NCBI RefSeq assembly: GCF_001194135.2
Contig: NC_068990.1
Coordinates: 15,045,621-15,080,425 of the forward strand
Direction: 5' to 3'
DNA from: Octopus bimaculoides
Lineage: Eukaryota
Length of the DNA stretch: 34,805 nucleotides
The first letter of the stretch is position 1. Every line of letters starts with the position of its first letter. The position numbers and the translations under genes are program-made. The notes beneath the pieces are model-generated. The model was not told the DNA's origin and ran no database searches. It saw only the letters and a program-made list of their open reading frames with translations. Of the stretch, positions 794 to 34,805 are shown one piece after another.

Positions 794-2810
794 TTTGCCA
801 TAATAACTGAATGTTCTTAGTATTTTATAGAATCAAAATAAATTAGGAATATTAAATCACAGATAACCAAATTTAATATTGTCTTCCTGTAAAGTTTTGT
901 TCATGTGAGAATGTGGTGATAGAAATTATGAGATTTTGTTCTAAAATTTTATTATAGAAAATTTACGTTCACTATGAATATCAGAAGAAAACTGCCTTCT
1001 GGGCCTTTTTCTGCCAGACTGTGTTATCTTCCTCTTCATCTTTCTCCTCTGCCTTATTATCACTATCATCATCTTTCTCCTCTTCATTGTTTGAAAGGTG
1101 TTATATGTCTAAATGTTCCTGCTATACAAGTTTCCTATTTTAACAGAATGTGTTCATTATACTTCCTTTCTAATTTCATATATGCTGTAGCCTTAATTTT
1201 TTTCTGAATTTGGTTATGATACTTCTAGAATTAAATATTCTTTACCATTTATAATAGTTTATTTTCAAACTGATCTAAATGTTGCTCACGTGGAGGATTT
1301 AAACCAGGGAGATTCTCAAACATTTTCTTTTATTCTGTATGTATGTATATATGCATATAGAATATAGGTGGTTAGAATATTCCAGTGGAATGCATCTCTG
1401 AATTCTAACGGTTCAATAACTTATTTTGAATACCTAACTGTGAGCAAACTGGCAAATGTTTGGAGAGAGCCCTTATTAATTGCCAATATATATATATATA
1501 TATGTATGTATGAAGTTAAATCTATGTCTGGTCATAAAGTGACCAATAGTTTTGCAAGCTTTACAAATGGCTCATCAGATTCCAATGGTTGTGGGCGTAT
1601 ACCCTCTTTTCAAACTGGAGGTAAGAAAACTGTTACGGTCAGTTAATTTGTAAACAAAAGAATATTATAAAAGAATATTTAAACAGGACAGGTTATCACC
1701 CTTAGACTGGTTTGGTCAGCAAATCTTATGGACCAGCAGGACGAATGGGGAATGGGGAATCTCCACCTGCTAGGTTGGTTCTGGTCCACAAATATTCTAT
1801 ACAGTCCTAATTGATGAATGGGAAATCCCATGTTTGCAGCAGGTAGTACTTGAAATGTGGACAGAGGCTATATGTCTTGTGTCTTGAATTTAAGAGAATT
1901 TTGGGGTCAATTGAGTTCTTAAAGATTCTTGCCTGCTCTGCTATGCAAAGTTTACGCCATTTATATAGGACCCCAGATGTTCTATTATCCTCTGTTTAAT
2001 TTTGTATGGAGTTCCATCATCCTTAAGGTGCCACACTTGGCTAGCCAAGGGCATGATATAACATCTTTCCAGCACCCTAAAAGAGGACCTGTGGTTGTAC
2101 AGGCACCAATTAAAGGTAGTTCCAGCTGAGCCAATATATCTCTAAACCAGCATGCTGGCTGTTTCCTCTGTTGGCCCCGAGTGTGAAGTTGTTGTTGCCA
2201 CTGCTGTCATTGGAGCTGTCATCAGTGCTGTTATTACAGGAATGAGGTTCTGGCGATACTGTTGCTACTGTTGCAGTTGTCATCCTTGGCTGCAGTGTTG
2301 GTGTTGCTGCTGCTGTTGCCAATGGTATCATGGCTGTCACCAGGGCTATTAATTCTGAGCATGTGACCAGTAGTTCTACTGGTGCTGGTGAGATCACCAT
2401 CTCCAGTTGTAGTGCTGGTGCTGGTGCTGTGGTCATATTTGTCGACGCTGGTGTTTCTGCCATTTAATGGTTTGCTCCTGTTGCCGCCTTCACTGTTACC
2501 ATGGGATGTCGCTAATGTTGTTCAATGAACTGCTGCTGCTACTTTGGTTGTTAGAGCTAGATACCATCACAGTCTCATATATGAATCCCTCATAAATATA
2601 TAAAAGTTGATTAATATATTTACATACAAATCAACACTTAGGAGGAAAACACTTAATTTTGCATTATGAAATATAAGGCACATTCTGTATTGTCTCTGTA
2701 ATTAATTAAGAAATTAAAGTGTGTGTATGATTACTCACTTACATATAAGTCTCTGCAGTGCAAGTTGAAAGAATTTACCTGCAGTATTTGACTTTTATCT
2801 CTCCATACAG

Positions 2811-3061
2811 AGTCCTGGTGTGTGATGAATGATGGTTTAGCTGATGCTTCATTAATAAGAAGTTGGGACATTAAAACTTCAAGCAATCAAGAACATGTAA
2901 ATTCCATCAGACCTGGCGGAAAAGGCTGGAAACCTGATCTCAGTGACACTAAACGTACTGTAACAATTTTTGTTGGAGATGCTTTAAGATATGGTGCAAC
3001 AATAAGATTATCCCATGCGAAATATGTGGAGAAATTTGATGTGATACTCAGTGATGGACAG
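2811..3061 (+). CDS. Exon A1: N-terminal half of discoidin-like domain 1 (SWCVMNDG...ILSDGQ), phase 1->0
   Basis: catacag|ag tcc tgg ... gga cag|gtaaat; 251 nt; one of five near-identical copies. Confidence 0.92.
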
Positions 3062-6000
3062 GTAAATTATATCTTGATTTAGAATATTTTGTTATTTTTA
3101 CACAAATTATTTAGTTATCTTTAATACATTAATTAATTTATAAGAAATATCTAATGCTCTCAATTAATATCTTGTTGTTTCTACACAAGCAGATCTATTA
3201 TGGAAAGCATCCCAGCAATGATCATTACTTCTTTTTTTTTTTCCGAGCCTAGTATAGCTTGGAGTACATTAGTCAGTGTGGATTTGCATTTTTTTTTCTT
3301 GTAGACTTACAGAGTCATTGAAGTTGTTTTCTCTTTTATGCCAAACAAAATAAGCAGAAATGATCAACATTAAGATTTGATAAATAATTAGATTTTTAAT
3401 TCAAAATAACTTTTGACTAGAACTTCATCTCATTTTATCTCGGTAGTTAACAATTATTTAGAATCACTTAATTTTACAATTTTGTTTTCTCCTTTGTGTA
3501 ATACCCAGTGCTGGATTAACCCATTAAGCAAAATAAGCACATGCTTAGGACATCAATGATATGAGACACCACAGATATGAAAATGCTTTACGGCATGAAA
3601 GAAATCACTTTAAACTTGCTATTTGTGATGCCTTATCTCTACCAAGTATAGAAGCAGAAATTTTGCATAAAATTGATTTTAACGATATCATCAAACACTT
3701 TGCAATTAAAAAAAAACAAAGGAGAAAACTTTTCAAATATAAATAAAATGGAAGCATACAAACATAAACATTATTTTCCATCTTACTGTGAATTTTGTTT
3801 CATTTCCCAAAATAAAAATTCATTTTATGTTTTATTATTGCTTACATTTTGAATTATTTTTGTTTACATTTTAAAACATTTACATATACTTGAGGGCACC
3901 AAAACTTTTTAAGTGCTTAGGGTCTTTATCTGCCCTGGTAATACCTACCAGAATTGGAAATATCTCTTATATAATGTAAGTTGCAATGATTCAACGTAAG
4001 TATGCAAAATAGATCTGTAAATTGATGTATATTATTTTTACAGAATACCAAACGTTTACAAAACAATAGCCCTGATGCTATTATCAAGATACCTTTTGGT
4101 ACCACAGTCAACAGTGTAAAATTACAATTTCACTCTGTCAAACCAGAATGTCAGATAGCTGTGACAGTATCAATTCTTGGATGTTTTGAATCACGTAAGT
4201 TTGATAGCAATTTTCAGTACAGTATTATTATATAAAATCACATTTGTAATTGATATTATATCCTATATATTAACTGATCCTATTCATCAAAGTAATTAAA
4301 TCATAAGCTTTAATGTGCTTAAGGGATGTTTTAAATGAAATAAGTGTAATTTCACTTCTTTAGCAAACTTTATGCTACAGTATTCCTTTGTGCTGTTTAT
4401 AGCACATATACTCATCATCATAATCATCATCATCATCATCATCATTGCCATCATCGTCGTCATCATCATCATTTAACATCATTGTTCCATGCTGGCATGG
4501 GTTGGAAAGTTTGACAGGATCTGATGTATCCAAGGATTGTATCCAGCTCCACTATCGGCTTTAGCATGGTGCTTATGGCTGGATGCACTTCATTACACCA
4601 GTTACTTTACAACATGGACTGGTGCTTTTTTTGTGCCACCTGCATTTTCCAAGCTATGGGTGGTAAAATTCGTATAACTTGTTATTTAACTATTTCTATG
4701 CATAAAATTAAATTGTTCTTTAATATCTTCCCTGTAGAATCTACAACTGAAGCAGCAACAACAGCTACAGGTATGTAGATGCAAGTTTTCATAATTGCAT
4801 TAAAGATCTGTTGGTTTCTCATACAGAAGGCATACTTGGGTTATCTTTCCAATGTAGATATCTCTGTATTTGTGTGTATGTATGTGTATGTGTGCATCCA
4901 TGTGCATGCCTGTGTGCACATACATGTATGTTTAAAGTGTAGGATTTAAAAAAAAACATTATACTTTATATATTCTGGGACTAAAATAATTGAATATCTA
5001 ATAATTTCTTCATACAGAATCATGGTGTGTGATGAATGATGGTTTAGCTGATGCCTCATTGATAAGAAGTTGGGACATTAAGACTTCAAGCAATCAAGAA
5101 CATGTAAATTCCATCAGACCTGGTGGAAAAGGCTGGAAACCTGATGCCAGTGACACTAAACGTACTGTAACAATTTTTGTGGGAGATGCTTTAAGATATG
5201 GAGCAACAATGAGATTACCCCATGCGAAATATGTTGAGAAATTTGATGTGATACTCTCTGATGGCCAGGTAAATTGTATTTTGGTCTCAAATATTTAATT
5301 ATTTTTATACAATTTATTTTAATACATTAATTAATTTATGCTGTCATTTAGCCCCATGTTAGTTCTGCTCCAGCAGACTGGTACAGAAAGCATTCTGGTC
5401 ATAAGCATCACTTTGTTTTGTCTGATATAGAGTAATTTGGACTACATTAGCCAGTGTGAATTTTACTTTTGAACCAAGCAAAACGAGCCAGAACAGATCA
5501 ACAGTATGACTTGATAAATACTTTGGTATTTTATATTAATTTGATAAATGATTACTACATTTTTAATTAAGTTACAAAATATCTTCTAACATGAGCTTCA
5601 TCTTTCTTTATTCTCAGCTATTATCATTTGTTTCGAAACACATATTTAAAATATTTTTCCTTTGTGCAATATCTACCAAAATTATCTCAAAATGCCTCTT
5701 ACTTAGTTTCACATTAGTATATTGTTATATTTTAATGTAATTTTTTTTTTAAATAATCCTGTTACCTAAACTATCATTTCTTCCTACAGAATACCAAGCA
5801 TATACAAAACAACAAACCTGATGCTCTTATCAAGATACCTTTTGGTACCACTGTCAACAGTGTAAAATTACAATTTTACTCTGTTAAACCAGAATGCCAG
5901 ATAGTTGTAACAGTATCAATTCTTGGATGTTTTGAAGCACGTAAGTGTAACTGCACTTTATAAACTTTATAATCCAAGATTTCTTTTTGCTATTTACAAC

Positions 6001-9000
6001 ACATACTCTATATACGTTTTAATCATGCAGAAAAAAATTGACTAAGTGGTAAAATAACATACTGTATAACTATTTCTATGCATAAAATTAACGTATTCTT
6101 TTAATATCTTTTCTGCAGAACCAACAACTCAGGGAGCAACAGCTACAGGTATGAAATTTACTATTTCCTCTACTGTGATATCAGAACGGTCTTATGTTAT
6201 GTAGAGACAAAGTATTGCATAAAAGTATTAATTTCTGTCGTATGCAATAATAATTGAGTGCGATTGTTAATTACAGGGTTAAAAATGTGTTGAAAATTAT
6301 TCTTTTCTGTATGAGTTAAGCAATGTAGTTTTACTTTGAGACATTCAATCGTATGAGCAAATGTAATGTTACAGATAATAAGAGACTGAGTTATAAAAAT
6401 CTTAATATACAGGTGCAGGCATGGCTATGTGGTAAGAAGCATGCTTCTCAATTACACGCTTTTGGGTTCAGTATCAAAATCACAATCTTGTGGTCATGAG
6501 TGAAACACCCTAACCACTAAGCCATGCATGCTTGCAATGATGTGCATCTGTAAGTGTTTACATCTGTAAGCCTGAAAGAGTAGAAACCTTTTGTATTTTC
6601 ATGATAACTAATGTAGAAAACAAAATGTGTGTGTGTGTGTGTGTGTGTGTGTCAGTATTTATTTGTGTCTTGGTCTGTACAATGTGAGGTAAAAGTATTT
6701 ACTACCAGGATTTAGCATCCACTGATTGCATAAATAATGTTGTTTTCTTCCTCTCTTCACACAGAGTCCTGGTGTGTGATGAATGATGGTTTAGCTGATG
6801 CTTCATTGATAAGAAGTTGGGACATTAAGACTTCAAGCAATCAAGAACATGTAAATTCCATCAGACCAGGTGGAAAAGGCTGGAAACCTGATCTCAGTGA
6901 CACTAAACGTACTGTAACAATTTTTGTGGGAGATGCTTTAAGATATGGTGCAACAATAAGATTACCCCATGCAAAATATGTGGAGAAATTTGATGTGATA
7001 CTCTCTGATGGCCAGGTAAATTATAACAGATCCTGATTATAAACTTATTTCATTATTTTTACACCATACATTTACTTATTATTGATGAATGTAGACATAA
7101 GCATGGCTGTGTGGTTAAGAAAGTTGCTTCCCAACCTCATGGTTTTGAGTTCGGACCCACTGCCTAGGACCTTGAGCAACTCTCTTCTACTATAACTCCA
7201 AGCCAACCAAAACTTTTCAAGTGGATTTGATAGACAGAAACTGAGAGAAGCCTGTCATATATGAGTGTGTGTGTGTGTGTGTGTGTGTGTCTCCTTGTTT
7301 TGATATCAAGTAATAATTGTAAATGAATGTCACTGTATTACAAGCAATATCATTCATCTATATCTATAAAAGGCAGGAAGTGGTGCGTGTGTGTGTGTGT
7401 GTGTGTGTGTATGTGAATGTACTTCATGCATGTCCACAAATTAGCACGCATGTCGCTCCAATTTTAGGAGGACATTGGTCACAGCCATGGTTGTGCTTTT
7501 GTCAAATTATTTTTCCTGAGGCACCCCCGGATAGCAGTAAAAATAACTTTTTAACCATAACTTTTACCAATTTTCATGTTGGTGAAATCCGTAAGTTTGC
7601 TAACATGAGTTAAGTCCCCTGTCTTATAAATTAAGCAGTAACTTTCATAAATCAGGATATAATTTTTGAAGACTAATTCTGAGCCCAAAATGTATGTATA
7701 TATATATATATATATNNNNNNNNNNNNNNNNNNNNNNNNNNNNNNNNNNNNNAGTTTTAGGGAAAATAACTAAGTTTCAAGAACTCATCGATGAAAATCC
7801 ACTATCACATATAGAAAAATTAATAATTAAAAGCACAATAAATGAGTATAATATAAAGTAAAGTAAATATCATAAGATAAATATAATAAAAAGATTACAC
7901 GTGTTTCATAACTAATTTTCAAATAGAAAAGAAATTTAGATCGATTAAAATCAATTGAAATTATCGAAAATAAATTCTATTCAAAAATATAGCTACTCGT
8001 CAGATCGTAAGTAGAACAATAATTAGATATATATATCTCAACCAACAATAAGTACCAAATGAATTAATATGAAATACTTATTATATAAAGATAGAAAAAT
8101 TATTAAAAATATCATAATATCAAAATAATATTAGAATAATATTAGAATAATATTAGAATAATATTAGAACTTCGATCTGAATAGTGTTGATATACTTTCG
8201 ATTATCTTTGATTAATAATATTTGATTAATAATTAATCTTTATAGTTTATAATATCGTTAAAGATTTTTAATAATTAAAACTTTGTATATATATAAAGTT
8301 TAATCTTTTATTCTTAATAATTTTTTCTTTCCTATTTTTTTCATTTGTGGGACTGAACCTGGAACCATGTAGTTGGGAAGCAAACTTTTTATCACACAGC
8401 TATGCCTGCGATCTTTTTATATAATTTTTTTTAAAGTGGGCAATATTAAATAAGCTGTATTATTTTTACAGAATACAAAGAATATACGAAACAATAATCC
8501 TGATGCTATTATCAAAATACCTTTTGGTACCACTGTCAACAGTATAAAGTTACAATTTTACTCTGTTAAACCAGAATGCCAGATAGTTGTGACAGTATCA
8601 ATCCTTGGATGTTTTGAATCACGTAAGTTTGACTTGTACTTTTTAAACAAAGTTTTCAGTCTAGAATTCCTGTGTACTATTTATATTAATTTTAACCCAA
8701 GTTATATTTTCAATACATTTTAATCATATATAAGAAAAATATAAATTTATGCCATAAAATTAACAAAATACTATTTATATAATAATCTGCTTGTTAGTAC
8801 ACCCATTACACATTAGTTAGTTAAAAAGGTGGAGGTGAAGTAAAAGTGAGAGAAGGGGAAGAATGTGATTAGAGAAGAAAGAAGTGAAGAAGAAGTAAAG
8901 AAAGATGTATAATAAGGCCAAATGTGTCATGTGGTTAGTTGAAGGAAGAGATGAAGAGCAAGAGAAAAAGACAGTGAGAGAAAAGAAGGAGAGAAAGGTG

Positions 9001-10052
9001 TTAGTGACATGTTGTAGGGTAGGAGGGGAGAGAAAGGCAAAGAGAAAGAGATATGTTTAGGATACAATATTTAGGAGAAGGTGATGTTCTGGTGGTGAGT
9101 TTAAAGAAAGGCAGATAGAGAGATGAACAGGGGAGGCAGTTACATTAAGAGAGAGAGAGATGGTGGTTATGGTGGTGGTGGTGGTGGTGGTGGTGGTGTG
9201 TTTATAGCAAAGAATATTTTTTCATTGAACTAAATTTATAATATTATTCTTCTACTTGTTAGTTTAGTTTATACTTTTGTTTGTTAGAGAGGAGGAGGAG
9301 ATAGAGTAAGAGAGAGAGAGGAAGAGGGAATGTGAGAGTAAGTGAGAGAGCAGATAGCCAACAGATGCATTATGCTGTCACTCATGTGGTTAGTGGAAGT
9401 GAGAGGTGATGAGAAAGAGAGAAATGTTAAAGACATGAAGAGGGGAATGACATGGTTAAAAAGTTTGTTGAAGAGGTAGAGAGAAAGAGAGAAATATAAA
9501 GTGCTTAGCAGAGGGAAATTTTAAAATCATATTATGTATTATTGTGACTGGAAGTGAAATAACTTAGCAAAATGAAAATTAAAATGAAAATCATCCTTTC
9601 TTTCTTAAATAGCTTTCCTTAATCTTTTTCATTCTGTGGAATTTCCATGGGCCCCACTTGTATTATATAATTGTTTCAGTGCTAACAATTTAATTATTCT
9701 TTAATATCTTCTCTCTAGAGTCTACAACAATAGCTGCAACAACCACTACAGGTAAGTAGTCTACAATATATGTTATCCCTTGTCTTTATGGCAAGGGATG
9801 TCATAAAAGCTTAGATTCATGTTAGATGTAATAATAATATTCAGCATTTCGCCCGGTGTGCTAACATTTCTGCCAGCTCTCCGCCTTGATGGTGGTCAGT
9901 GATTTCTTGTTACTGCTACTTCTAGCAGGTCAAGCAATGTGATAGAGACTTCTTTGATGGCTTAGATTACTAAGATCATTCTGACTAATTGTATATGCAT
10001 TGATGAGTCTGTATAAGCTGTTATGTTTATTTTAGTTTTCCATTTTGTTTAT

Positions 10053-10083
<31 letters not shown>

Positions 10084-13000
10084 GTGTGTACATGCCTGTC
10101 TGTGTGAGGTAAAAGAACTACTTCTTATCACCATAGCTAATATGGAAAATAAAGGGCATGTGCTTATATGCTCTTTTGAGTGTGTATATATGTATATATG
10201 TTTGTGTATGTATGTGAGAGAATATTCACTAATGTACAAGTTTGTACAATATTTATTAATGTAGGTTGGCATTAAGAAGGGCATCCAGCTGTAGAAACTT
10301 TGCCAGATCAGATTGGAGCCTGGTGCAGCCATCCGGTTCGCCAGTCCTCAGTCAAGTCGTCCAACCCATGCCAGCATGGAACGCAGACGTTAAATGACGA
10401 CAACAATGATGATGATGATGATGATGATTGAATAAATAATGTTGTTTTTCCTCTCTTAATACAGGGTCCTGGTGTGTGATGAATGATGGTTTAGCTGATG
10501 CCTCATTGATAAGAAGTTGGGACATTAAGACTTCAAGCAATCAAGAACATGTAAATTCCATCAGACCTGGTGGAAAAGGATGGAAACCCGATGTCAGTGA
10601 CAAAAATCCTACTGTAACAATTTTTGTTGGAGATGCTTTAAGATATGGTGCAACACTAAGATTACCCCATGCGAAATATGTGGAGAAATTTGATGTGATA
10701 CTCTCTGATGGGCAGGTAAATTGTTTACTAATTTAAAATAATATCTATTATTTTAAATTAATTAACCATTTGTAATTGTTATATTGCTTATGTGATGAAA
10801 ATACGTTTAGCATAAATTAAAGTAATAACAGTTAGATTGCCTTATTTGTATATGACCTCTTCACACAATATATAGGGTGGGCCAGAGTTCATGACTAACT
10901 TATTAGTTATATTTCTTAATATGCTTATTTTATTGTCATTCAACATCATCATCATCATTGTTTAACATTTGTTTTCTATGCTAGCATGGGTTGGACTGTT
11001 TGACTGGAGACTGGTAAGCCAGGAGGCCTCACCAGGCTTCAATCTGATCTGGCAATGTTTCCTATTTCTTTACTGCCCACAAGGGGCTAAACACAGAGGG
11101 CACAAACAAGGACAGACAAAGGGATTAAGTCGATTACATCAATCCCAGCGCGTAACTAGTACTTAATTTATCGACCCCAAAAGGATGAAAGGCAAAGTCG
11201 ACCTCAGCGGAATTTGAACTCAGAACATAACGACAGACAAAATACCGCTAAGCACTTCGCCCGGTGTGCTAACGTTTCTGCCAGCTTGCTGCCTGATCTG
11301 GCAATGTTTCTACAGCTGGATGCCCTTCCTTATGCTAACCACTTTGAGAGTGTAGTGGGTGCATTTTACGTGCCACTGGCATGAGAGCCAGTCAGGCAGC
11401 ACAGGTACTGGCCACGTTCAGATGGTGTTTTTTATGTGCTACTGACACAGGAGCCAGTTGGGGCAGGGGATGGGGGTTGGGGTATGCTGGCATCAACCAG
11501 GTTCCGTTGGTGTTTTTTACGTGCCAATGACATGGGGAGCCAGTCAGGCAGCATGCATGAATGGTGCTTCTTGTGTTCCACCAGCATCAGAGCCAGTCAG
11601 GCAGCACTGGCATCGGCCATAACTACAATTTCCATTTGATTGTGATTTGATTTTTTATTTTGATTTTACTTGACTCAATATCAGTGATACTGATATTAAA
11701 TCAACAAGGAGCCCTTCTTTCTACAAGTGTCAATTTGATTGACTCATTCATTTTACTTCTCTGAAGTAAATCTAATTTTACAAATTACGTTAATGCTTAT
11801 AATTAAACTATTACATCATACAAAGTGTATAACATTATCCATTACAATTGTGGTTTTATATAGCAATACTTTATTGAAAATACAATTACACTAACGTGGG
11901 CTGGTTATGCAATGCTGGTATAGGCTACGGCTGTGATCTCACTTTACTTCCTGGGTCTTCTCAATCACAGCATATTTCCAGAGGTCTTGGTCTTTCATCA
12001 TTGCCTCTGTGAGGCCCAACGTTCGAAGATCATGCTTCACCACCTCATCCCATGTCTTCCTGGGTCTCCCTCTTCCAACGGTTCCTTCAACTGTTAGGGA
12101 ATGACACTTCTTCACACAGCTCTCCTCATCCATATGCAGTACATGACCATATCAGCGCAGCCATCTCGCTTGCACACCACATCTGATGCTTCTCATCTGA
12201 TGCTTCTTATGTCCAACATTTCTGTCAGGGTACTTACATTCTGTCATGTGTGCACACTGACATTACAATTATTGTATTATTTTATTTCTTAACATGTTTA
12301 TTTTACTGATATTGTATTGTTTAAATTTATTATTTTATCTTTTAATATCCGTATTAATAAATATTAATATATTAATAAATTTAACTAGCAAGTTTGTATA
12401 AACAAATGCTATATATTCTAAGCTAGTGATTACCTGACTTGTTATTCATATTCAGTATTCATCCCTTTATTCACTTATCACCAACATTTTGATAAATAAT
12501 TACCTTTTCATTACAGGTAATTAACCAGTGATTGATCTCTTGCTATGCACATTATTTTCATCTCTTGTGTATCAAATCTTCTTATGTCAGTTTTATCTTT
12601 CTCTTGTACCTGCAATAGTTACTGGGAAATGTCTATATATAATTGTACACTTGTATATTGGTATGTTTAACGTAAAGTTTTAAAAGAGGCAATATTAACT
12701 TTGTTATATCTCTTTAACAGAATTCCATGCACATGTCAAACAATAAACCTGATGCTATTATCAAGATACCTTTTGGTACCACAGTAAACAGTGTCAAATT
12801 ACGATTTCATTCTGTTAAACCAGAATGCCAGATAGCTGTGACAGTATCAATTCTTGGATGTTTTGAATCACGTAAGTGTTATTGTATTTTCAATAAAGTA
12901 TTGCTATATAAAACCACAATTGTAATGGATGATATTAATTACACTTTGTACGATGTAAATAGTTAAATTATAAGCATTAATGTAATTTGTAAAATTAGAT

Positions 13001-16000
13001 TTACTTCAGAGAAGTAAAAGGAATGAACCAATAAAATTGAGACTTGTAGAAAGGAAGGGTTCCTTGTTTGTTTAAAATCAGTTTCACTGATATCACAAAC
13101 GGTTAATGTTAGTCATTCTATATTTACTTGTGGCTATAGAAACCATATAAGAATATGACAAACAGAATATGTTTTTCTTGCCTTAAAAGCTATTCAAATT
13201 ATACTCTAACTGTTACTTGGAACCACAAGGAAATGGCTTAATCAGGAAAGTTTTGGTATATATTTAAAATTGTTAAATTTAAACATGCAACAATACACTA
13301 TATACAGTTGTTTCTATTAATTGAATTAAATTCTGTTTTTAATATCTTCACTTTAGAATCTACAACCGAAGCAGCAGCAATAGCTACAGGTATATATCTG
13401 AAAACTTTCCCCTTTGCAATGTAAATATGTTTGTTACTCATACAGGAGGTATATATGACTTACTTCTTTGAGTTCTATTATGTGAGGCATGCTCGTGTAT
13501 GAATACATGTGTAAAATATAAGATTAAAAAATGTATCTTTTATAACCTGGACTTAAATAAATGAAGAAATAATGTTGTTTTTTTCATTTCTCAAAACAGA
13601 ATCCTGGTGTGTGATGAATGATGGTTTAGCTGATGCCTCATTGATAAGAAGTTGGGACATTAAGACTTCAAGCAATCAAGAACATGTAAATTCCATCAGA
13701 CCAGGTGGAAAAGGCTGGAAACCTGATCTCAGTGACACTAAACGTACTGTAACAATTTTTGTTGGAGATGCTTTAAGATATGGAGCAACAATAAGATTAC
13801 CCCATGCAAAATATGTGGAGAAATTTGATGTGATACTCTCTGATGAACAGGTAAAAAACATGATCTTGTCTATCTACTTCTCTTATTAATTTATTTTTAT
13901 AGGATGTGGCAAAACAAACTCACATATTTTTCATTTGAAAACACACAGTGTGTACTGATTAAATTTATGATGGTAACTGAAGAAAGCAATAAAATATTAT
14001 CTCCATGAAGACACCACTACCGCCTGCCTAACTGCGCTGGTGCCACACCAATAGCTGTGTAAAATATGTGAAGTTTTTTTGATACACTCTATAATAAGAA
14101 ATGTTTAGTGCTGTTGCTGCTTTTCATCTCTATACCAATCTTCATTCAGCAGACTTAAGATGAAATGAAGACTCTTGTTTTAGGCATATTATTACTTGCA
14201 TTAGCCAAAGTGTAGCCAACCTTTTATAAAATGTTAGAATACAACTGGAAAGAATTTAGCTGTTATTTTTAAAAGGGTAGGAAATAGCATTTAATTCTAA
14301 ATGTATAAATAACACAAAGATATTGATGAATATTTAGGTTTTACATTAAAAATAATTTGCAACCAAAGCTTCTTCCCATTTTATTTTCATCATTTATCTC
14401 TTCTGCAAGAACACTTAATCTTCAGTACTTTTGATTCTGTAAATTCTTTCATAACTACCTGTAAATGGTTTCATATATACCTTTACATAAGTATATTGGT
14501 ATGTCTTATTGTAAATTTTTTAAAGTTGACAATGTTGGTATCTCTTTCTACAGAACACCAAACCTCTTCACAACAACAAACCCGATGCTATTATCAAGAT
14601 ACCTTTTGGTACCACAGTCAATAGTATAAAACTACGGTTTTACTCTGTTAAACCAGATTGCCAATTAGTTGTAACAGTATCAATTCTTGGATGTTTTGAA
14701 TTACGTAAGCATAAATGTACTTTTCAACCTTTTTAATATCAATCTGCTTGAGACCACTTTTAGTCTTATAAAACAAAATTCCATTTTAAAGTGATATACC
14801 CTCCAGCCTTCATCAGGTGTCTTGGAGAAATTTCAAACCTGGGTTTTCGTTCTTAAGGTATTTTTCAATGTTATTATTATTATTGTTGTTGTTGTTATTA
14901 TTCAGGTCACTGCCTGGAATCGAACTTGGAATCTTGGGGTTAGTAGCTACTAACCCCAAGATTTTGAGTTCGATTCCAGGCAGGGACCTGAATAATAATA
15001 ATATTAATAATAATAATAACAATAATAATAATAATATCGAAAAATACCTTAGGAATGAGAACCCAGGTTCGAAATTTCCCCGAGACACCTGATGAAGGCT
15101 GGAGGGTATATCAGCTGAAATGTTGTGTTAACAACAAACAAGATGAGGACAAATATCTGTCAAATGTAAATAATGTACATAATTCCTCATCTCTTAAACT
15201 GTAAAGTGTACCAAATAACCAATAATATCAAGCAGATGAAATAGCAATCTTATGCATGTATATGTGTGTATGTGTGTGTGTGCGTGTGTATGTGTGCGCG
15301 CGCGCGTACATACATACACGTAATCATATAAACATGTTGTTTCATTTTTGAAGAGCCATGCAAAATTGTTGATGGAATGTCTAGCTCTGAGTACATCCCA
15401 AGCAGCTCCATTAAGGTATCCAGCAACCCAAGATACGTCAATGCATTGAGACCCTTCAGAGATGGCTGGAAATCTGATGAGAGAGATCACAAGCGAACTA
15501 TTACTATCAATGTTGGAAATGCATTTGTGAAGGGTGGTCATATCAAGTTAAAAAAAAGTAAATTTGTTGCAAATTTCGATGTTATTTTTGATGGAAATCA
15601 CAGCATTAAGGTTAGTATTCTTTTATGACTTGAAATATTCTCTACATTTCAATCTTTTTTTTTTTATGACTGCAATAATATCTGCTTTATATGCTGGCAC
15701 CATGTAAAAAACACTCATACAAACTCATTGTAAAAAATACTCATGCTGGTGCCACATGAAAAGGCACTCATCCTGGTACCACATGAAAAACATTTGTGTC
15801 GGTGCCATGTACTCTGGCTTTAAGGGTATTGTGAAAGGCCTGGTTGGAGGCCCAACTTTCTGAGTTCTTTTACAGGACTTAGAAAAACTGAAGGACTACT
15901 GCAATAAGTGTGTGAATCTGAAAGGAAAATATGTTGAATAAAACCATAATGAACTGATCCTCCTGTATTTTCTTTTACCCAAAGCCAGGAACTTTTCAGC

Positions 16001-19000
16001 ACCCTCTCCTAAAAGTACTCATGCCAGTACCACATAAAAAGCACCCAGCACACTCTGTAAAATGGTTGGTGTTAAGGGCATCCAACCATACAAACTATAC
16101 CAAAACACACAACTGAAGCTTGGGCAGCTCTCTGGCTGGTGAGCTCCTGTCAAACCGCCCAACCCATGCCAGCATGGAAAACAGTCATTAAACATATATT
16201 TGACTTTGTAAAGTACAAGATAGGACAGTACATGGACTTGTGGTTTGGGTGTTTGTTTCATAATTGTAAGTTCCTAGTTTTAACACCCGAACTAGTTAGC
16301 ATGTGGAAAACATTTCACTTCATGTTGCACTCCTCCTCCCAACTGAAAACCATTGCCAGCAATATCAGGTAGAGGTGGGCGTTAACCCTGGGACAAACTA
16401 GAGTCCTATGCAGTGGGGAATATTATACTTTTGTACACCTATATACCATGAAAATCTGAATAAATACTTGCCTCATGATTCTGTAGGCTTGTGACAGACC
16501 TATTTACCCAACCTTTTTTTACTGTAAAGTAATAACAAAAATCTATGTTCAAAATTCTCCTCCTCCTCCTCCTCATCATCATCATCTAATGTCTGCCTTC
16601 CATGCTGGCATGGATGGGACAGTTTGACAGGAGTCAGCCAGGCTGGAGCCTGTACCAGACTTCTGTGTCTGTTTTGGCACAGTTTTTATGGCTGGATGCC
16701 CTTCCTAACACCAACCACTCAGCAGAGTGGACTGAGTGCTTTTTATGTGGCACCTGCTCAGGTGAGGTCAGTTTTGCCAAAAAATGTGTAATTAAATGGA
16801 ATATTTCATTATGCTCAATTTTGTTTAAATTAAATTTCATTTTCTTTAAAGGGAAATAAACCTGGACAAACTATTACAATACCACGTGGAACTAAATATG
16901 AAAAGGTTACTTTGAAATTCTATCCAACTGAAAACTGTAGTGTCATTGTGGCAATTTCTATCAAAGCTTGCTTCAAAGAAAAATGTAAGTAAAGAAAATT
17001 TCATCACTAGAAAATCTCTGTCAAAGGTATTGCCACATTGAAACCTTTAGCATTTAGACCAGTTATATCTGGCTCAGATACTCCATCTATTTTATGTTTA
17101 AACTGGTGAGATCTGGCCTCTCTCACAGCTTACCTTACAATGTTGTACAAAGAAGACGATGAAATCTGTTAAGATTTTTGACAAACAAAATTTTATTTTT
17201 TCTTTACACAAAAAAAAACAAACGTTGTTATGAGAAAACCAAAATATTGAAAGAGTTTTGGATTCTAATGTTCTTGGTGTAATTGTAGCAGCAGATAAAG
17301 TATTGTTAGTTACTTGCCAGCTACTGACTTCTAATACCCATTCATCCTCTAGCTGTTCATTGCCTTTGTATTGACAGCTGTTGTCCACCACCTCTGTTTG
17401 GCCATCTCCTACAGTGTCTGTCAATGTTCTCTCAGCAACATCTCAAAGCTCTCTTTCTAGTAGTCATGGCGTGTCGAATTTATACTGGTTGATAGGCTCA
17501 GAAGGAAGTGCTCCATGACTGGTCAGATTTTGTTGATCACATGGGCAATATTCTATTGAATCACAACATTAGGGAATTGCTGAATATTCCCACTACAATG
17601 TCACTCCAAATAATAAACAATCACATCATCAAGATCTGAAAGCTATGAGATAATGCATGAGATAATGCACGATTGATTTAGAACAATGAGAATAAATAAG
17701 CATTACACTTGACAGAGTAATCTGAATGCTACAGAATTAAGTGATTTTATTAGAATTGTCTAATTATGAACTGTTAAACAAGGAAAAAGATTTGATAAAG
17801 AGACATTCAAAGCCTATTTGATGTAGGATGGCATCAAAATTAAAATACATTTGTTTCTTTAGAAAAACATTATCAAATTTTTATTCTGTAACCAGAAGTG
17901 ATTTCAAAATTTTTATATTTAGTATAAGTATTATATTTACTTAGAATCTTTCAAGTTATTTTATTTCTGAAAATATTTTCATTACATTATTTACATAAAT
18001 TTAAAATAGGATTTGGTTCACAAGTTTGATCAAATTCACACAGAATTAAAATAAAATTTAGCATACAAATTAATATAACTTATTAGCAATAAATTTATAT
18101 TTCATTTCTTAAAAGCTAAAGGCCAGTATATAGAAGAACCTGTCACCGGAAGAGCACCAGATGTTATACCAAACGAACTAGTTTCCACTGGAGGTAATGT
18201 TTATATTGATATTTCTAAAAATATAATGGTGAAAGACATGTTTGGAGATATTTTATTCATAACTAATAATACAAAATTTGTACTTAATAAGTGAGCATTT
18301 GTTACTTTTTAAATTCTGTTTTATTCTCTGTTTTCCTAGAATTTCTTTACTACCACTTAAATCTAAAATCTAAAATGGAATACCCAATGGAAAAAATTTT
18401 TCAGTAATACGATAACTGTGGTGTATGCGTGCGAGTAGAAGTAATCGGCTTACCTTGGTTTTCCTTCCTTTGCACAAGTCTGTCCTGCGGTATCCGATCC
18501 TCACGGCTCGCCCGACCCAAAGAACACTAGAAATAGCAGCTGCTTCTCCCAACACCTAGACGATCGCTTGGCACGTCCTCTCCTGACAACAGGAGTACGA
18601 AATCCCGATCGAGGCTCCCTCTGCCCTTCTTCCTCTTTCGGTCAGCTCGCCGTTCTGGTCAGCTCCCCAGTTGCTGACGTCATACCACAATAACTACAGC
18701 TAAATATGTTCAAAAGAAGGTTTCTTTCAAGTTTTTTTTCCCCTCTTCAACCTTATCAGTGGCCCTCTGTAAAGAGGAAACATCATTTTACAGCATCAAA
18801 AAGAATTTGGCAAAATCAATAGATTTTGTCTACTGAACTTGCAAAAGTCCACACCCAGTTCACAACTCTAAAACAATGTTCGGCAATAACTGGTAAATAG
18901 TCTCTCACATGTACCACAAACTACAGATTCCTTACGCAGGCACCAAAAAAACAGATAAAACTGAAACATTTGCTCATGCAGCCATTCTCTCCTATGCTCA

Positions 19001-21469
19001 TTCTCTTATAATTCCTTTTACAAAATAAAAAAAACAGTCCCAAGATTCTTTTTCCAAGTGACTGTTATACACCACAATCCTGCTTCTAATCTTAAAGATT
19101 ATTCTATCCAACAATAATGCTAACAGAACTCACTGTTTGTATTTTTTCACAAGTCACGTGACCAATAAAATGAGTTCCTCTCTTTGTGCTTGTCATGAGG
19201 CTCAACCTGAGCTACCTTTCCTTGTTTTTCATTGCTTGCTTTATCGTTACACAAACTAATTATTCTTTATACATCTATGGTGTATCACCAAGTAGCTCTG
19301 TCCACTGATACATTATTCAGGAATTATACACAGATCACAACCCAACTCCTCCATTGTAATGTACAGCAAGCTCCGTGTGGTTTGACCCATACCTTCAGTC
19401 CAATTTAGAAAGATACAGGCTTCCACTTCATTAGAAGACACCGGCACAGTTTGTTGATACCTTCATTCATATTTAAACACTGCTCTTTGTGGTATTGACT
19501 CTGCTTTTCCTTTCCTGATCTGGGCAACATGTTATACCAGAAGACTACCTCAAGCAGCAAGCTGTGTCATTCTACATTACCATTTCTAATTGATCTATAT
19601 GCAGCTCTGAAATAACCTATCAAATACCAGTATTTCCTTCAGCACTTCCAATCTAAATGCTGGGATCTTGCTTATCTGTTCATTAACACTAGGTCTATCG
19701 GACCTCTTAACAAAAACATTTCATTCATCATTGTTATAACTGAGGCTCTTGTCTCTCTGATCTGATCTACTTTCATATGAGTACCTTTCCTGATCTGTGA
19801 CTGGTTATTGTTAGGTATACACCTTTTTTGGTAGTGCATAATATCAATTCTCATCCTTTTCTGGCTGCTTACAACCTAAACGTCTCCTTTGTTTGTACTG
19901 CATAGCTTTAACTGAAGAGACGCATAATGTGGATAAAACACTATGATGTTCTCTGTTGAGGAACAACAACAGCTATCAGATGTTCACAATCAGGTCTGCC
20001 AGAACATTTTATGAATGGAGGCATTATTGTCTGGGTTTTTGCTGTTTTGCACTCCATGAATTACTAAAATTAGGAAAAGTTGATACAAACACCAACTTTT
20101 GAACAGAAGATGTTGTGATATGTATAAACGTAGGAAGATGGTTTTTCTATCACAAATTTATATAGAACTTGAGAGTTTTAGCAGTTTGTGTCTGGAATGC
20201 AAACTCCTGAAACAGAAACCAGAGTTTCTAGTTGATACTTATGATTTTATCTTTGCTTTTCTTTAGCATAATGCTTTGATCTACCAACCATATGATTTAA
20301 ATTGTAAAATTTAATATTCATTAATAAATTTTATATGAATTTTAGAAGCTGAGAAACAAGTAGAACCTGCTCCTCTTTCTCGTTCAGGTAAGTTGATAAC
20401 TTTCAAATAAGCTTATTCAAAAAGCAAAGATAACCTAATCTTTTTGATATTATGTTATGAATCATCATGAAACAGCAGACTGCATTCTTTGAATTGTTTC
20501 GCTTCATTCTTCTTGGTTTGCAATCCCATAAAGAGTAATGTGACTTTATTCCCTGGTGAGTGGGTCAATAGAATAATTTCGTTTACTTATCTTAATTTGG
20601 AAATTTCTTATTCTTATTTGTCATATCAGTCAATGAATGTATAATGTTCTATGGTACTGTTCTGACTCTCTCCTCTTTCACTCCTCTATTTCTCCTCAGT
20701 CACACCCCTATGTCTCTCTTTTACTACTATTATCTGCTCTGTTCTTTGTCATCTCTCCTTCAGTCTTTCCCTTTTTAGATCTAAATTTTCCCCAGCAGCT
20801 ATTTTATCTATAAATTCTACCTTCTTTATTTAACATCACAAAACAGTGTTGTTTAATCCCTGATTATGCAGAACCCTTGTCAAGGCTATTCCTACCTCAG
20901 CCATTCTATTTTTTTTTTTTTATTAGGCATAATGTCTCTAAGACTGCTTTATCAAGTATGACCTTCTATTTTAAGATGTTAGGATTTGTGCTGAGATTTG
21001 GCAGCTATTTTTAGCAGGTCAAGCTATCTCANNNNNNNNNNNNNNNNNNNNNNNNNNNNNNNNNNNNNNNNNNNNNNNNNNNNNNNNNNNNNNNNNNNNN
21101 NNNNNNNNNNNNNNNNNNNNNNNNNNNNNNNNNNNNNNNNNNNNNNNNNNNNNNNNNNNNNNNNNNNNNNNNNNNNNNNNNNNNNNNNNNNGTGTGTGTG
21201 TGTGTGTGTGTGTGTGCATGTGTGTGTGTATCTGTGTGTCTGTGTTTGTCCCCCTATCATTGCTTGACAATCGATATTGGTATGTTTACGTCCCTGTAAT
21301 CTAGCAGTTCGGCAAAAGAGACCAACAAAATAAGTACTAGGCTTAAAAAGAATATTCTCTGGGCTCGAATTGTTCGACTAAAGGTGGTGCTCCAGCATGG
21401 CCACTGTCAAATGACTGAAACAAATAAAAAAAATATGAATTTCTTTGAAGACAAAATTTTTCATTGCAT

Positions 21470-21504: not shown

Positions 21505-23869
21505 TTTCAGTATGCACATTTGACAAATGTACATTCATGAGAGAATTTGGCTTCGACGGTCCACACATAGTTGGTTGGATTGAGAAAGACGGCATTGAGG
21601 GTATTACAAATGAAACTGAAGTGGTTTATATGGAGGAAAAACTAGAAGAGGGTGTTGTTATCAATGTTGCTTGTACTCAATGGTAAGACATATAACTCTT
21701 AGACAAGAAAGTGTTCTGAATAAGTTTGTGTATTTTGAATTGTCTAATGTTCCAGACAAAATAGTTTATATACAGCTTGTAGCTTTGTGTATAGCTTTGT
21801 GTAAAACTTTTAAATTCATTGGAATTAAATTTACATTAAATTTTACCATTATCAATAAAATAACTACCATGAAAATAATTCCTACTAAACTAGGCACAGG
21901 TGTGGCTAAGTGTAGTTTACCAATTTATGCCTTGTGTCTTTTTACAATTTTTAACTGCAGATCGGTAATAATAAAAGCTTTATTTTATTAATAATTTTTC
22001 AGTTTATGTAAAAATGGAAATATAACATGTGATCATAAGATATGTGAGGGTGAGTCTTTTTTTGTATTTGTTTTCTTTTATTTTTTCTTTAACCTTTAAC
22101 CATTTTGATACCAGTCCACCTGGGACCACCTCTGGTTCTATTATAAAAATGTTTTAAAGTGATCTGAGCTAAAATTTTTCATCAAAATTTCATGTCAATT
22201 TTTGTTCCAAATACTGGCTAAATAGTGGCAAAGTTACATTGATAAATTCTTCGTTATTTTCCCAATTAATTAACACAAAAGCAGTGTTCTTCCACGGTGT
22301 ATTTTCTTATACATTAACGTGCCACATCAAATAATCTATTCATAAATAAGTAAAAAAAAAACTCATAATATGTTGAAAAGTGTATTAATCTCCATCAACA
22401 GGAGGAATTTCAACGATGCTTCGTGGTCTGCTACCACAACAGCACCTTTATAGGATCCAGTTAGCTCAAGACATCATCAGGAGTAACCACATCCGGTTTC
22501 GGCCCCTACTCCTCTACCATTTTGACGTGGCGCCCCCCCCCCTTTTGGAGGTATCTTCAGCTCTGGTGTTGGGTGCATGTCTTCTTTCTTCTATTCCCTG
22601 GCCTCTTCGATGCAGCATCAACGAGTGTCAGCGTCCGACTGACTGTCTTGTCAAATTCCCCTTTTTATACCTACTGCTAGGCTCCAGCAGGCTGCCCCAG
22701 CAAGTTGTCACGGGACACTGTCTAAATTTCCCACTGCTAGGGTCCAGTAGGCAACCCCAGCAAGTTGTCACATGACACTGTCTAAACTTCCAATAATAAT
22801 TTGACAAAATGTATATTTATGTAGAACTTTACAACTGACTTTTTATTATCATCTGTAATTTAGATAAGTATAAATCTGTTGATTAAATTATGGTTTAATT
22901 GTTTGCATCGAGGCAGAAAAGCGACTCCATGAAGCACAGTACTTAATGTCTTCTATTGGGACTGGATTTATCTTTCATTGGCCTTGTTTGATAAAATACT
23001 ACAAATCAGAAACAATGGTAAAAACAAATCCCTTTCACTTGTTCAGAAATTGATGAAAATATTCCAGTGTGACAAATTGGATAACCCTTTCACATTCTGA
23101 TTACTCTGTCAAATTTAATACTGTTTTGAATTAATCATGTAATATCTCATAGCTTTGAGATTTCAATGCCAGTGTGGGATAAGTGTGAGAAGCTGGATCT
23201 GGCTAGTTTGAACATAAAACAGATGGAATATTAGGCCAGATATAAGGGAGCAAGCTTCAGAATTGTTAGCCCACTGATGAAATGCCACTAAGCATTTCAT
23301 CTGTCTTTACATTCGAGTTCAAATTCCACCAAGGTCGACTTTGCCTTTCATCCTTTTGGGGTCAATAAGATAAGCACCAGCTGAGCATAAGGGTTGATGG
23401 AATTTGCATTCTAAGTTCAAATTCATGAAGGTCATCTTTGTCTTTCATCCTTTTTGGGAACAATAAAATAAATACCAGCTAAGCACTGGGGTTGATACAA
23501 TTGACTTACATCCATTCCGACATTACTGGCCTTGAGCCAAAATTTGAAACCACTATTTAGGCCAGATATGGCCATTTTAAATGCTAAAGGGTTAATCTAT
23601 TTTCTCATCCTTTTGGTTAAATTAATTTATTTCCAGTAATTTTTAAAATGTTTCAGGATGTATGTATTCTGGATGGCAGGGTTGGAGTTCTTGCAGCAAA
23701 ACCTGTGATAATGGATTTAAAATTAGAACTAGGGGAAAACATGTTGGCAAAGGGAATGAACCATGTAATCTTCCATTATCTGAAATTCAAGATTGCAATA
23801 TAAAGATATGTCACGGTAATCAGCTTTTTAATTTTTAATTTAAACTAATTATTTCTTTATTTTGTTTTA

Positions 23870-23910: not shown

Positions 23911-25235
23911 CTTTTCTTTGCATTGTAAATTATTCTTTCAGAATGAAAAAGTGAATCGACCCCAGTACTTATTATTTATAAAGCCTGGGAGTTATTCTAC
24001 CTGTCTATTTTGCTAAATTATTAAGTTACAGGGATGTAAACACACCAACATTGGTTGTCAAGCATTGGTGGTGGCAGGGAACAAACACAGACACAAAGAC
24101 ACATACACATATATCTCTATATAGATATAGATATAAATAAGTAAATATATATACACAGATGTGTATGATTGTGTATAGAAGAATATATTACTCAAAGAAT
24201 TAAAAGATTGAAAAGATATAATTTGTGTTCAGTAATGAATTTATATAATGCAGAAAAGAAACAAACACGAGAAATATTATACATCATTTTATTTTACTTT
24301 TATCAAGCTGAAACCGTTTGGTCTTCTTGGAGTAGTTGGAGTCCCTGCATTATTTCTAAACAAGATGCAGTTGGTTCGTCTATACGTAAGCGTACATGCC
24401 ATCGAGGAATTGACGATGAATGTGCTGGAGAAGTTTTACAGACCATGCCCTGTCAATCAAAAGTCAAGACAACCAGTAAGTATATTTTTTTTTAATTGGT
24501 GACGATAGGAATAATATTCAGCTTTATTTAATCCTTTTAATACTTTGATGCCAGCCTGTCTGGGGCCACCCTTGGGCCTATGGTAAGAATATCTGTAAAT
24601 AAAGGATGTTAAAAAAAAAAGTAATGATGTTGATTATACATGTATGTATGGATGGATGGAGGGATGGAGGGAAAGAAAGGTAGTAATGCAGATAAGCACA
24701 GTCAGGCTTTACACACACACATGCACACACACACACACGCATACACAGGCACATATATATACACACATATATATACACATACACATATATTTACATAAGC
24801 TAATATATTTACATAGAGCATAAAAAAGACAGAACACTAAGAAGAAAATACATAATTTCTTAACTCAACAGCTGTTTATATAAATGTATTTTCGTTGATA
24901 TATATTTAAATATGTTAGTAAAATGTGTATTAACATATAAATATACATATTAACATATAAATGTATATATTTTATATTTTGAAATCAATAAAATCTTGTC
25001 ATTATTCTGAATAAATAATAGAGTTATAAGGAAATACATTTTTTGAATTGCAGAAGTTTGAGGAGTGAAAATGTTTGTCAAAGGGACAGACTGTAGCATG
25101 ATTCCATAGAGAGAGACAGATCTCTCTGTAGAGAGAGAATGATTGAAGAATTTGTCAAAGTAACTAACTGCACCCCCCCCCCTCCCCCACTAAAAATGGT
25201 AACTTTGTATCAAAATTTGAAATTATTATTTTTGT

Positions 25236-25279: not shown

Positions 25280-25871
25280 ATAGAAGTAAAAGTAGAGAGC
25301 TGGCAGAATCGTTAGCACACTGGGCAAAATGCATAGCAGTATTTCATCTGTCTTTATGTTCTGAGTTCAAATTCCACCGAGGTCAACTTTGCCCTTCATC
25401 TTTTCAGGCTTGATAAATTAAATACCACTTGTGTACTGGGGTCGATCTAATCGACTGGCCTCCTCCCACCAAATTTCAGACCTTGTGCCTATTATTATTC
25501 AGTAGTTTTATTTTTATAACATGCTTTCACTTCACTACCGAGCGCAGCTCTGTGCGCCTTGGGTATGTGCTGTGGTTTGCTGTGGTGCTCTTATGGTTAC
25601 TGTATTGAAAGTGTTTTGCATAGGATGTGTGCTGTGCCCAGTAGTGCANNNNNNNNNNNNNNNNNNNNNNNNNNNNNNNNNNNNNNNNNNNNNNNNNNNN
25701 NNNNNNNNNNNNNNNNNNNNNNNNNNNNNNNNNNNNNNNNNNNNNNNNNNNNNNNNNNNNNNNNNNNNNNNNNNNNNNNNNNNNNNNNNNNNNNNNNNNN
25801 NNNNNNNNNNNNNNNNNNNNNNNNNNNNNNNNNNNNNNNNNNNNNNNNNNNNNNNNNNNNNNNNNNNNNNN

Positions 25872-33667: not shown

Positions 33668-34574
33668 NNNNNNNNNNNNNNNNNNNNNNNNNNNNNNNNN
33701 NNNNNNNNNNNNNNNNNNNNNNNNNNNNNNNNNNNNNNNNNNNNNNNNNNNNNNNNNNNNNNNNNNNNNNNNNNNNNNNNNNNNNNNNNNNNNNNNNNNN
33801 NNNNNNNNNNNNNNNNNNNNNNNNNNNNNNNNNNNNNNNNNNNNNNNNNNNNNNNNNNNNNNNNNNNNNNNNNNNNNNNNNNNNNNNNNNNNNNNNNNNN
33901 NNNCAAAACTGGTGCATAATAGGAAAATACTATAAATTAAGTTACCCTTGAAATATTAATACGGTCGGAATAAAACAAGTTTTACTTAACTCAGACAAAT
34001 GGTTTTTGAGATATTAGGGGTTTTCAGGTTATAAATACCCAAAACGGTGCATAATGGGAAGATATTCTGAAAGTAACTTAATTCTGAAAGAGAAGAAACT
34101 CTTACCTTTCGATTAGACACAGTGACTTGACAATAAAAAAATACGATTTGTTTCTTACAGTAAACGTTTCTATTTTTGATTTTGTTAAATACAATATTTT
34201 AATCATTTAGAAATATTTTTAAGTGAATGTGATTTCAAAAATGTAAGTTATTTGTACAGTAGGTATTTATATTTTAGCTTTCTTTAAACAGACAATACTT
34301 TAATGTTTTTTTTAAATTAATTTCAAGTGAATACCATTAAAAAATTTTATTTTGGCGTTTCTAAAAAATATTTCAAAGTGAAAATGACTTTAAAAATATG
34401 TCAGTAGATATAAATATTTTTACAATATATATGAGTGTATAAAATTTATACATGGAGAAACGATCAAATAAGAATGTTCTTTCGTGGCTTGGGAATTTGA
34501 TTGCCATTTTTAGCATGTAAGAAGACCTCATAGTGGTCTTCTCTCCATGTATAAATTAGATACACTCATATATA

Positions 34575-34805
34575 TCATCATCATCATCATCATCATCATC
34601 GTTTAACGTCCACTTTCCATGCTAGCATGGGTTGGACGATTTGACTGAGGACTGGTGAAACCGGATGGCAACACCAATCTAATTTGGCAGAGTTTCTACA
34701 GCTAGATGCCCTTCCTAACGCCAACCACTCAGAGAGTGTAGTGGGTGCTTTTACGTGTCACCCGCACGAAAACGGCCATGCTCGAAATGGTGTCTTTTAT
34801 GTACC
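34575..34805 (-). mobile_element. S1 copy, inverted relative to 1-232
   Basis: Reverse complement matches 1-232 apart from a few substitutions and one short deletion. Confidence 0.85.

Follow-up and report, generated by a model that had tools for sequence, protein, structure and literature searches.

Results

A tandem array of three-exon modules

The 34,805-nt stretch of the Octopus bimaculoides genome analysed here (contig NC_068990.1, positions 15,045,621 to 15,080,425 of RefSeq assembly GCF_001194135.2), hereafter the window, carries on its plus strand a tandem array of exons at positions 2811-16984. An initial annotation, made from the DNA letters only, had described this array as an amplified exon module building five near-identical domains and one divergent domain of discoidin-like type in an SCO-spondin-like protein. 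Similarity alignments and splice sites, taken over the whole window, defined five copies of an exon A (251 nt each), five copies of an exon B (151 nt each) and four copies of a micro-exon C (33 nt in three of them, 30 nt in C2), followed by a divergent pair, A6 and B6, which was located by tblastn and whose boundaries were read by eye. The exons, and the assembly gap among them, are as follows.

2811-3061, plus strand: exon A1, 251 nt, encoding the N-terminal two thirds of domain 1; spliced as acag/..CAG/gtaaat, with 2 leading nt
4044-4194, plus strand: exon B1, 151 nt, encoding the C-terminal third of domain 1
4738-4770, plus strand: micro-exon C1, 33 nt, linker STTEAATTAT
5018-5268, plus strand: exon A2, 251 nt
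5790-5940, plus strand: exon B2, 151 nt
6119-6148, plus strand: micro-exon C2, 30 nt, linker PTTQGATAT
6765-7015, plus strand: exon A3, 251 nt
7716-7752, no strand: assembly gap of 37 N in the intron between A3 and B3, with (TA)n as its left flank
8472-8622, plus strand: exon B3, 151 nt
9719-9751, plus strand: micro-exon C3, 33 nt, linker STTIAATTTT
10465-10715, plus strand: exon A4, 251 nt
12721-12871, plus strand: exon B4, 151 nt
13357-13389, plus strand: micro-exon C4, 33 nt, linker STTEAAAIAT
13600-13850, plus strand: exon A5, 251 nt
14554-14704, plus strand: exon B5, 151 nt
15354-15610, plus strand: exon A6, 257 nt, divergent, about 43% aa identity to A1-5 and 58% to its orthologue
16852-16984, plus strand: exon B6, 133 nt, divergent, 57% identity to its orthologue

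A repeat scan returned a 300-nt unit in five copies (89-100% identity) and a 198-nt unit in five copies (81-100%), and similarity between copies extends from about 14 nt upstream of the ..ACAG acceptor to about 35 nt past the GTAA donor. All 15 introns separating the 16 exons of the array are of the GT..AG type, and their sizes on remeasuring (178-2005 nt) are the values given in the initial annotation. Exon A has 2 leading nt and a phase-0 end, exon B starts in phase 0 and ends at +1, and micro-exon C has 2 leading nt and a +1 end; module borders are all phase 1, and A+B+C amounts to 435 nt (432 nt in module 2). Splicing from A1 to B6 leaves an open frame of 842 aa, in which four Thr/Ala/Ser linkers of 10 to 11 residues lie between the first five domains and the sixth follows without a linker. 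The 37-N gap lies 700 nt 3' of A3 and 719 nt 5' of B3; the reading frame is independent of it, because the A3/B3 junction is phase 0 on both sides as in the four other modules.

These data confirmed that the array of A-B-C exons is real, with three-exon modules and a divergent terminal pair, and the layout first described, five near-identical domains and one divergent domain from five A/B pairs and four C exons, proved exact to the base. The count of differences between copies was likewise reproduced (16 nt and 3 aa between A1 and A2, 6 nt between A3 and A5), and the statement that exon length and phase are constant holds for A, for B and for all phases, but not for the length of C, since C2 has 30 nt.

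Identity of the A+B domain

Exons A and B together encode a 134-aa unit, in which the cysteines at positions 3, 119 and 130 are invariant in six of six copies, and domains 1-5 share 90-94% identity with domain 2. When an exon-A profile was run exhaustively by HMMER against 1.84 billion representatives, 26 proteins were found, several of which are full-length relatives; P0020, a 5259-aa bacterial repeat protein, was discarded as a low-complexity false match. The A-like and B-like parts are contiguous in several of the full-length molluscan relatives, which gives the A-to-B splice independent support, and from these alignments we take A+B to be one compact domain of about 130 aa. The relatives include XP_064614628, annotated "mucin-2-like", from the chiton Liolophura sinensis, with seven copies of the domain between Thr/Pro-rich stretches; XP_052821907 of O. 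bimaculoides, with the domain and PTS (Pro/Thr/Ser) repeats; and CAI9741633 of O. vulgaris, which also carries an A+B-type domain. They share the domain family, and its alternation with Thr/Pro-rich mucin-like stretches, with only 18-27% identity to the window domain, their PTS linkers run to tens to hundreds of residues as against 11 in the window, and no TSR or TIL domain was seen in their models.

To place the domain, a 23-sequence family alignment was compared by hhalign with six FA58C domains, each confirmed by Pfam (E 1e-22 to 1e-35). The match (95% probability, E 4.1e-8) covered 127 columns, positions 3-130 against 2-157, with both terminal cysteines aligned; C3 and C130 correspond to the first and last cysteines of FA58C, a predicted disulfide. 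Against the PDB the family profile matched neuropilin b1/b2 only (E from 0.003), a profile of the six copies found the CASPR2 discoidin domain in register, weakly (E 0.34), and one relative (P0023) gave a sub-threshold match to PF00754 (E 1.7e-4, 22.1 bits against a cut-off of 28.2). Pfam run on the six spliced domains yielded a stray sub-threshold PH_4 as its sole match. AlphaFold2 models were made of two relatives, with the window exons entering as alignment rows, and both are beta-sandwiches (P0026, pLDDT 85.5, pTM 0.79; P0016b, pLDDT 93.5, pTM 0.87). For both models the best Foldseek matches were factor VIII C2, neuropilin b1, the CASPR2 discoidin domain, lactadherin C2 and CBM32 (TM 0.59-0.68, E down to 6.6e-6).

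The beta-sandwich of factor VIII C2, neuropilin b1, CASPR2 and lactadherin C2 is thus found in the models of two family members, and the window domain retains the N- and C-terminal cysteine pair and a similar N-terminal signature, C-x3-[DL]G[ML]...I...I..SS...R...W. It differs from FA58C in being about 130 rather than about 155 aa long, in lacking the TQG and GN.D motifs and in adding a third, odd cysteine near the C terminus; the signature of the subfamily itself, C-x3-DG[ML]...IP...I..SS...RPxxxGW, has no Pfam match. Profile comparison and modelling together point to a compact, divergent member of the F5/8-type-C (discoidin) family, strongly for the family and indirectly for the window copy. 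Each of the six window domains has this odd, unpaired cysteine, Cys 119 (..KPEC.., for example 5895-5897 in B2), as do the core copies of the second species described below; it is absent from the divergent modules on one of the contigs of that species (ctg115470l). It could be a cross-linking site.

The orthologous array in a second species

Contig ctg122297l (376 kb, GC about 30%) of ENA assembly ERZ21867824 was reached through exon-A open reading frames (ORFs) at about 67% aa identity, and about 51 kb of this contig was covered, less a 1.8-kb stretch. In order, this locus has a B exon, four near-identical A/B modules (at least five core modules), two divergent modules, one 64% identical to window A2 and the other about 49%, and an orthologue of A6/B6 (58% and 57% identity), after which two TSR exons, a TIL exon and a small Cys exon follow in window order. 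The boundaries of exon A agree with those in the window (2 leading nt, CAG/gt donor), exon B is 151 nt by hand count, and the intervals from B to the following A contain Thr-rich micro-exons, for example STTEMATTPT, which are 33 nt long except for one of 27 nt. All of these are present at the syntenic locus, which places the origin of the module, its linker exon and the array with its divergent last domain before the two species separated.

All ENA matches come from this one assembly, which has at least four contigs with the domain family, including ctg61611l, ctg115470l and ctg118745l. Three mutually divergent A/B modules were found on ctg61611l and five on ctg115470l, and these two contigs may derive from the upstream region of the same, very long gene; on ctg115470l a called 1974-aa ORF ends just upstream of the divergent modules. 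The spacing of more divergent modules in this species is about 6 kb, and as the window includes just 2.8 kb of sequence ahead of A1, the array has at least six domains.

Probable homogenisation of the core copies

In a neighbour-joining tree of the window copies and those of ERZ21867824, window A1-5 fall into one clade and those of the other species into a second, while A6 pairs with its orthologue. Identity is 93-100% within species as against 61-71% between species, and the exon A copies are 93-99% identical in protein. The ratio of nonsynonymous to synonymous divergence (dN/dS) is 0.14-0.32, in agreement with the purifying selection suggested in the initial annotation, and the overall synonymous divergence (dS) among window copies is 0.15-0.28. 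The two exons differ in this respect: mean dS is 0.14 in exon A and 0.36 in exon B, and modules 3 and 5, which are the closest pair in exon A, are among the most distant in exon B (dS 0.069 against 0.714, Fisher p 3e-5), which excludes a single history of duplication. Identity above 90% ends about 10-35 nt from the exon edges in both species, and introns align in patches only (72-82%).

That the copies cluster by species but A6 joins its orthologue is the pattern characteristic of concerted evolution, which keeps the five core copies alike, and the simplest reading of the alignments would be repeated, exon-sized gene conversion, most active on exon A. The recent, lineage-specific expansion first proposed did not stand, because the same A(251)-B(151)-C(33) module array lies at the syntenic locus of a distant species at about 67% aa identity, which makes the array an old one. 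Most amino acid differences among the copies fall at the start of exon B, in a loop adjoining the A/B junction. Diversifying selection on this loop was considered and rejected (pN/pS 0.43), the value pointing to a loosening of constraint and not to positive selection.

The gene downstream of the array

B6 ends in phase 1 with T and joins the exon at 21511 in frame (T+TA = Leu); a direct splice from B6 to the TSP1 exon at 23657 was rejected, as it would create TGA. The conserved exons 21511-21682 and 22003-22049, found by comparison with the orthologous locus, restore a continuous frame. The downstream features are listed below.

21511-21682, plus strand: Cys-rich exon, weakly VWC-like, 70% aa conserved at the orthologous locus
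22003-22049, plus strand: small Cys exon (CLCKNGNITCDHKICEG), from comparison with the orthologous locus
23657-23815, plus strand: TSP1 repeat exon (PF00090, E 2e-11)
24308-24475, plus strand: TSP1 repeat exon, from Pfam and the orthologous locus
26501-26744, plus strand: TIL domain exon (PF01826, E 5.6e-10)
28084-28149, approximate ends, plus strand: small Cys exon, conserved at the orthologous locus
28241-28318, approximate ends, plus strand: first half of a TSP1 repeat, from comparison with the orthologous locus
near 30530-30670: Cys-rich exon
33362-33530, approximate ends, plus strand: TSP1 repeat exon (PF00090, E 7.7e-10)

The window therefore has the alternation of TSP1 with TIL or Cys-rich units by which SCO-spondin is recognised. 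A six-frame motif scan of the window gave no LDLrA (LDLa) repeat, and no vWD, EMI or CTCK domain was found in the window, from which the gene runs off at both ends. The combination of long PTS regions and vWD that marks gel-forming mucins was also not found, the linkers having 10-11 residues and the window no vWD. Chick SCO-spondin has 1 EMI, 3 vWD, 1 FA5/8C, 13 LDLrA, 12 TIL, 27 TSR, 7 vWC and 1 CTCK (PMC8487547). Like vertebrate SCO-spondin, the window gene has a discoidin-type region and then alternating TSP1 and TIL/Cys-rich units, its exons being phase-matched; it differs in having at least six discoidin-like domains with Thr-rich linkers where the vertebrate protein has a single discoidin domain, and in lacking LDLrA between these domains and the TSRs. 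The first description of the protein as SCO-spondin-like is borne out by the downstream TSP1 and TIL exons, but not by vWD, LDLa, EMI or CTCK within the window. Judged from these domains, "SCO-spondin-like" is a fair description, and membership of or orthology to SSPO is at most putative.

Assembly gaps, upstream sequence and intron elements

The flanks of the gap at 7716-7752 match dispersed repeats only, as found when intron homology was used to check continuity across it. It is possible that this region hides an in-frame B-C-A unit, and also that further copies have been collapsed into the gap. Farther downstream the gene has three more assembly gaps, at which exons could be missing: 21032-21191, which is 320 nt before exon 21511; 25649-25871; and 33668-33903, about 140 nt after the TSP1 exon ending near 33530.

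A search for an earlier B, C or conserved exon in the 2.8 kb ahead of A1 gave only a weak 20-aa B-like match (2155-2214, plus strand), which falls within low-complexity sequence and lacks conservation in the ERZ21867824 species. The segment 2113-2521 has no stop codons in several frames of both strands and contains imperfect (TGCTGT)n-like repeats. On its minus strand it holds a 117-aa Thr/Ala/Ser/Pro-rich ORF, resembling an inverted linker code of micro-exon C, which has no Pfam match and is not conserved in the ERZ21867824 species.

Several elements were found in the introns. An inverted duplicate (11712-11898 and 12869-13058, 91-94% complementary) brackets exon B4; its right arm overlaps the last 3 nt of B4, indicating that the sequence just downstream of B4 was copied, reversed, into the intron between A4 and B4. 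The intron between B5 and A6 contains a palindrome of about 336 nt (14785-15120), with arms 84-88% complementary and flanking ATT/AAT runs, which is probably a MITE-like (miniature inverted-repeat transposable element) insertion. A minus-strand ORF at 11942-12151 (...GRGRPRKTWDEVVKHDL...) was read as the tail of a long interspersed nuclear element (LINE), and Pfam gave for it only a sub-threshold AT_hook. A family like short interspersed nuclear elements (SINE), starting with (TCA)n, has four copies, at 4451-4535, 10940-11024, 16564-16648 and 34581-34665. Transposon debris accounts for much of the variation in intron length.

Discussion

We consider it probable that the window holds the middle of a large plus-strand gene for a secreted, SCO-spondin-like or mucin-like matrix glycoprotein, with an old discoidin-type array under concerted evolution. 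The predicted product would present six discoidin-type domains as beads in series, encoded by phase-1 symmetric modules, such that unequal exchange between modules would add or remove whole beads in frame. Gene conversion or unequal crossing-over, nearly confined to exons and strongest on exon A, would keep the beads alike under purifying selection. The Thr/Ala/Ser linkers are probably O-glycosylated spacers, the beads may act as a multivalent array binding glycans, lipids or matrix partners, as the fold suggests by analogy, and the odd Cys 119 could give intermolecular cross-links. The protein may be part of a secreted gel, fibre or mucus. SCO-spondin-like proteins are present in O. vulgaris skin mucus (PMC11431876, PMC10138644), and a link of the array to mucus is a possibility.

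Several points weigh against this reading. Protein searches found no transcript, spliced protein or annotated product with the array: a word-indexed search with domains 5-6 gave no match, the family-alignment search only four exon-A ORFs, and a search with the downstream TSR/TIL exons no match at E<=1e-10. No peptide of the array or of the downstream exons is among the entries listed in the supplements of two O. vulgaris skin-mucus proteome papers, where the species may differ, so that this is not evidence of absence. None of the six window domains matched PF00754 (F5_F8_type_C) even at E<=10, and the discoidin-like assignment of the initial annotation thus stands on the profile-profile comparison, the PDB profile matches and the models of relatives, but not on this Pfam family itself. 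The evidence on fold comes from relatives 23-27% identical to the window domain, and the proposed binding function is suggested by the fold. Selection at synonymous sites, rather than conversion, may account in part for the low dS of exon A, and the window covers the middle of the gene, the N- and C-terminal parts of which lie outside it.

Recent, lineage-specific amplification of one A-B-C module would make the copies alike because they are young, and it would fit the grouping of the five core copies as a species-specific clade, the overall dS of just 0.15-0.28 and the 72-82% identity of the alignable intron patches, which is similar to exon dS. This account is nevertheless unlikely, since the same module, with its exon sizes and micro-exon C, is arrayed at the syntenic locus at about 67% protein identity, and since A and B of one module give discordant ages. 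The modules might instead serve as alternative cassettes, skipped or mutually exclusive, giving isoforms that differ in the number or version of domains: A+B+C is a multiple of three, all borders are phase 1, any A joins any later B in frame, and the differences between copies are concentrated in one loop at the start of exon B. With exon A copies 93-99% identical in protein, alternative use would yield little diversity, the pN/pS of 0.43 in the variable loop does not indicate diversifying selection, and the Liolophura relative is modelled with its 7 domains in series; we regard cassettes as unlikely.

As to the domain, it could be another beta-sandwich, a carbohydrate-binding module (CBM) or other jelly-roll, whose likeness to discoidin is convergent. 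PF00754 is silent on it, it falls about 25 residues short of canonical FA58C and has neither TQG nor GN.D, and Foldseek also gives CBM32, IFT25, APC10 and lectinolysin, which have the same galactose-binding-like superfold. The profile-profile match, however, is full-length and in register with both terminal cysteines included, the PDB profile matches are to the neuropilin discoidin domains only and the top structural matches are animal FA58C domains, which makes convergence improbable. An artefact of assembly, in which false haplotype duplicates or mis-joined reads produced the array, or conversely a larger array was collapsed, might be suspected from the one N gap within the array and the three downstream, repeat arrays being easily mis-assembled. 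This we hold to be highly improbable, as the copies are 2-7% apart in A and 8-18% in B, the introns differ in length and repeat content, and the independent assembly of another species has the same tandem layout. Concerted evolution of an old discoidin-type array remains the preferred reading.

That the array might be of an undescribed kind was not upheld, since tandem arrays of discoidin domains have been described before, with six FA58C domains (47-55% identical) in sea-urchin Nectin and four in sea-star Sfp1, both in adhesive or cohesive secretions, and discoidin domains recur in temporary adhesives, those of limpets included (PMC10057474, PMC7037938). The likeness to Nectin and Sfp1 lies in a tandem run of discoidin domains (about six) in a secreted invertebrate matrix or adhesive protein, and a free surface cysteine proposed for dimerisation in Nectin has a parallel in the odd cysteine of each window domain. 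The domains of Nectin are of canonical FA58C type, differ a fair amount from each other and have no described linker exons rich in Thr, whereas those of the window are 90-94% identical, belong to a divergent subfamily and lie within a TSR/TIL protein.

At the level of the gene, the closest analogue would be the SRCR-SID array of DMBT1/gp-340, in which many near-identical exons for a binding domain are interspersed with very small linker exons rich in Ser/Thr, and all share one phase. DMBT1 is a protein of mucosal secretions, and its arrays are prone to copy-number change and homogenisation; it differs in having the SRCR rather than the discoidin fold, and the window domain is split over two exons. 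What is distinctive in the window is the compact, Pfam-invisible subfamily shared with molluscan "mucin-like" proteins, the two-exon domain with its linker exon, the TSR/TIL setting and the homogenisation limited to exons.

Tentatively, these features can be drawn together into a wider proposal, possible though not favoured: A+B may represent an unclassified, mollusc-wide, compact discoidin subfamily that supplies the globular beads in mucin-like and SCO-spondin-like proteins secreted by lophotrochozoans, the cephalopod arrays being kept uniform by single-exon gene conversion, and an unpaired cysteine in each bead allowing a gel or fibre to be cross-linked.

The finding does not overturn existing ideas. 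It illustrates cleanly the growth and maintenance of a modular extracellular protein, with a three-exon, phase-1 module shared across distant species and homogenised within each, and the different histories of the two exons of one domain point to conversion tracts of exon size. Standard annotation misses the subfamily, several molluscan proteins with it being labelled "mucin-like" or "uncharacterized", and the annotation of cephalopod mucus, adhesive and matrix proteins may therefore under-report such binding arrays. As multi-discoidin proteins are central to adhesion in echinoderms, the cephalopod counterpart is a reasonable candidate for a part in mucus or adhesive biology.

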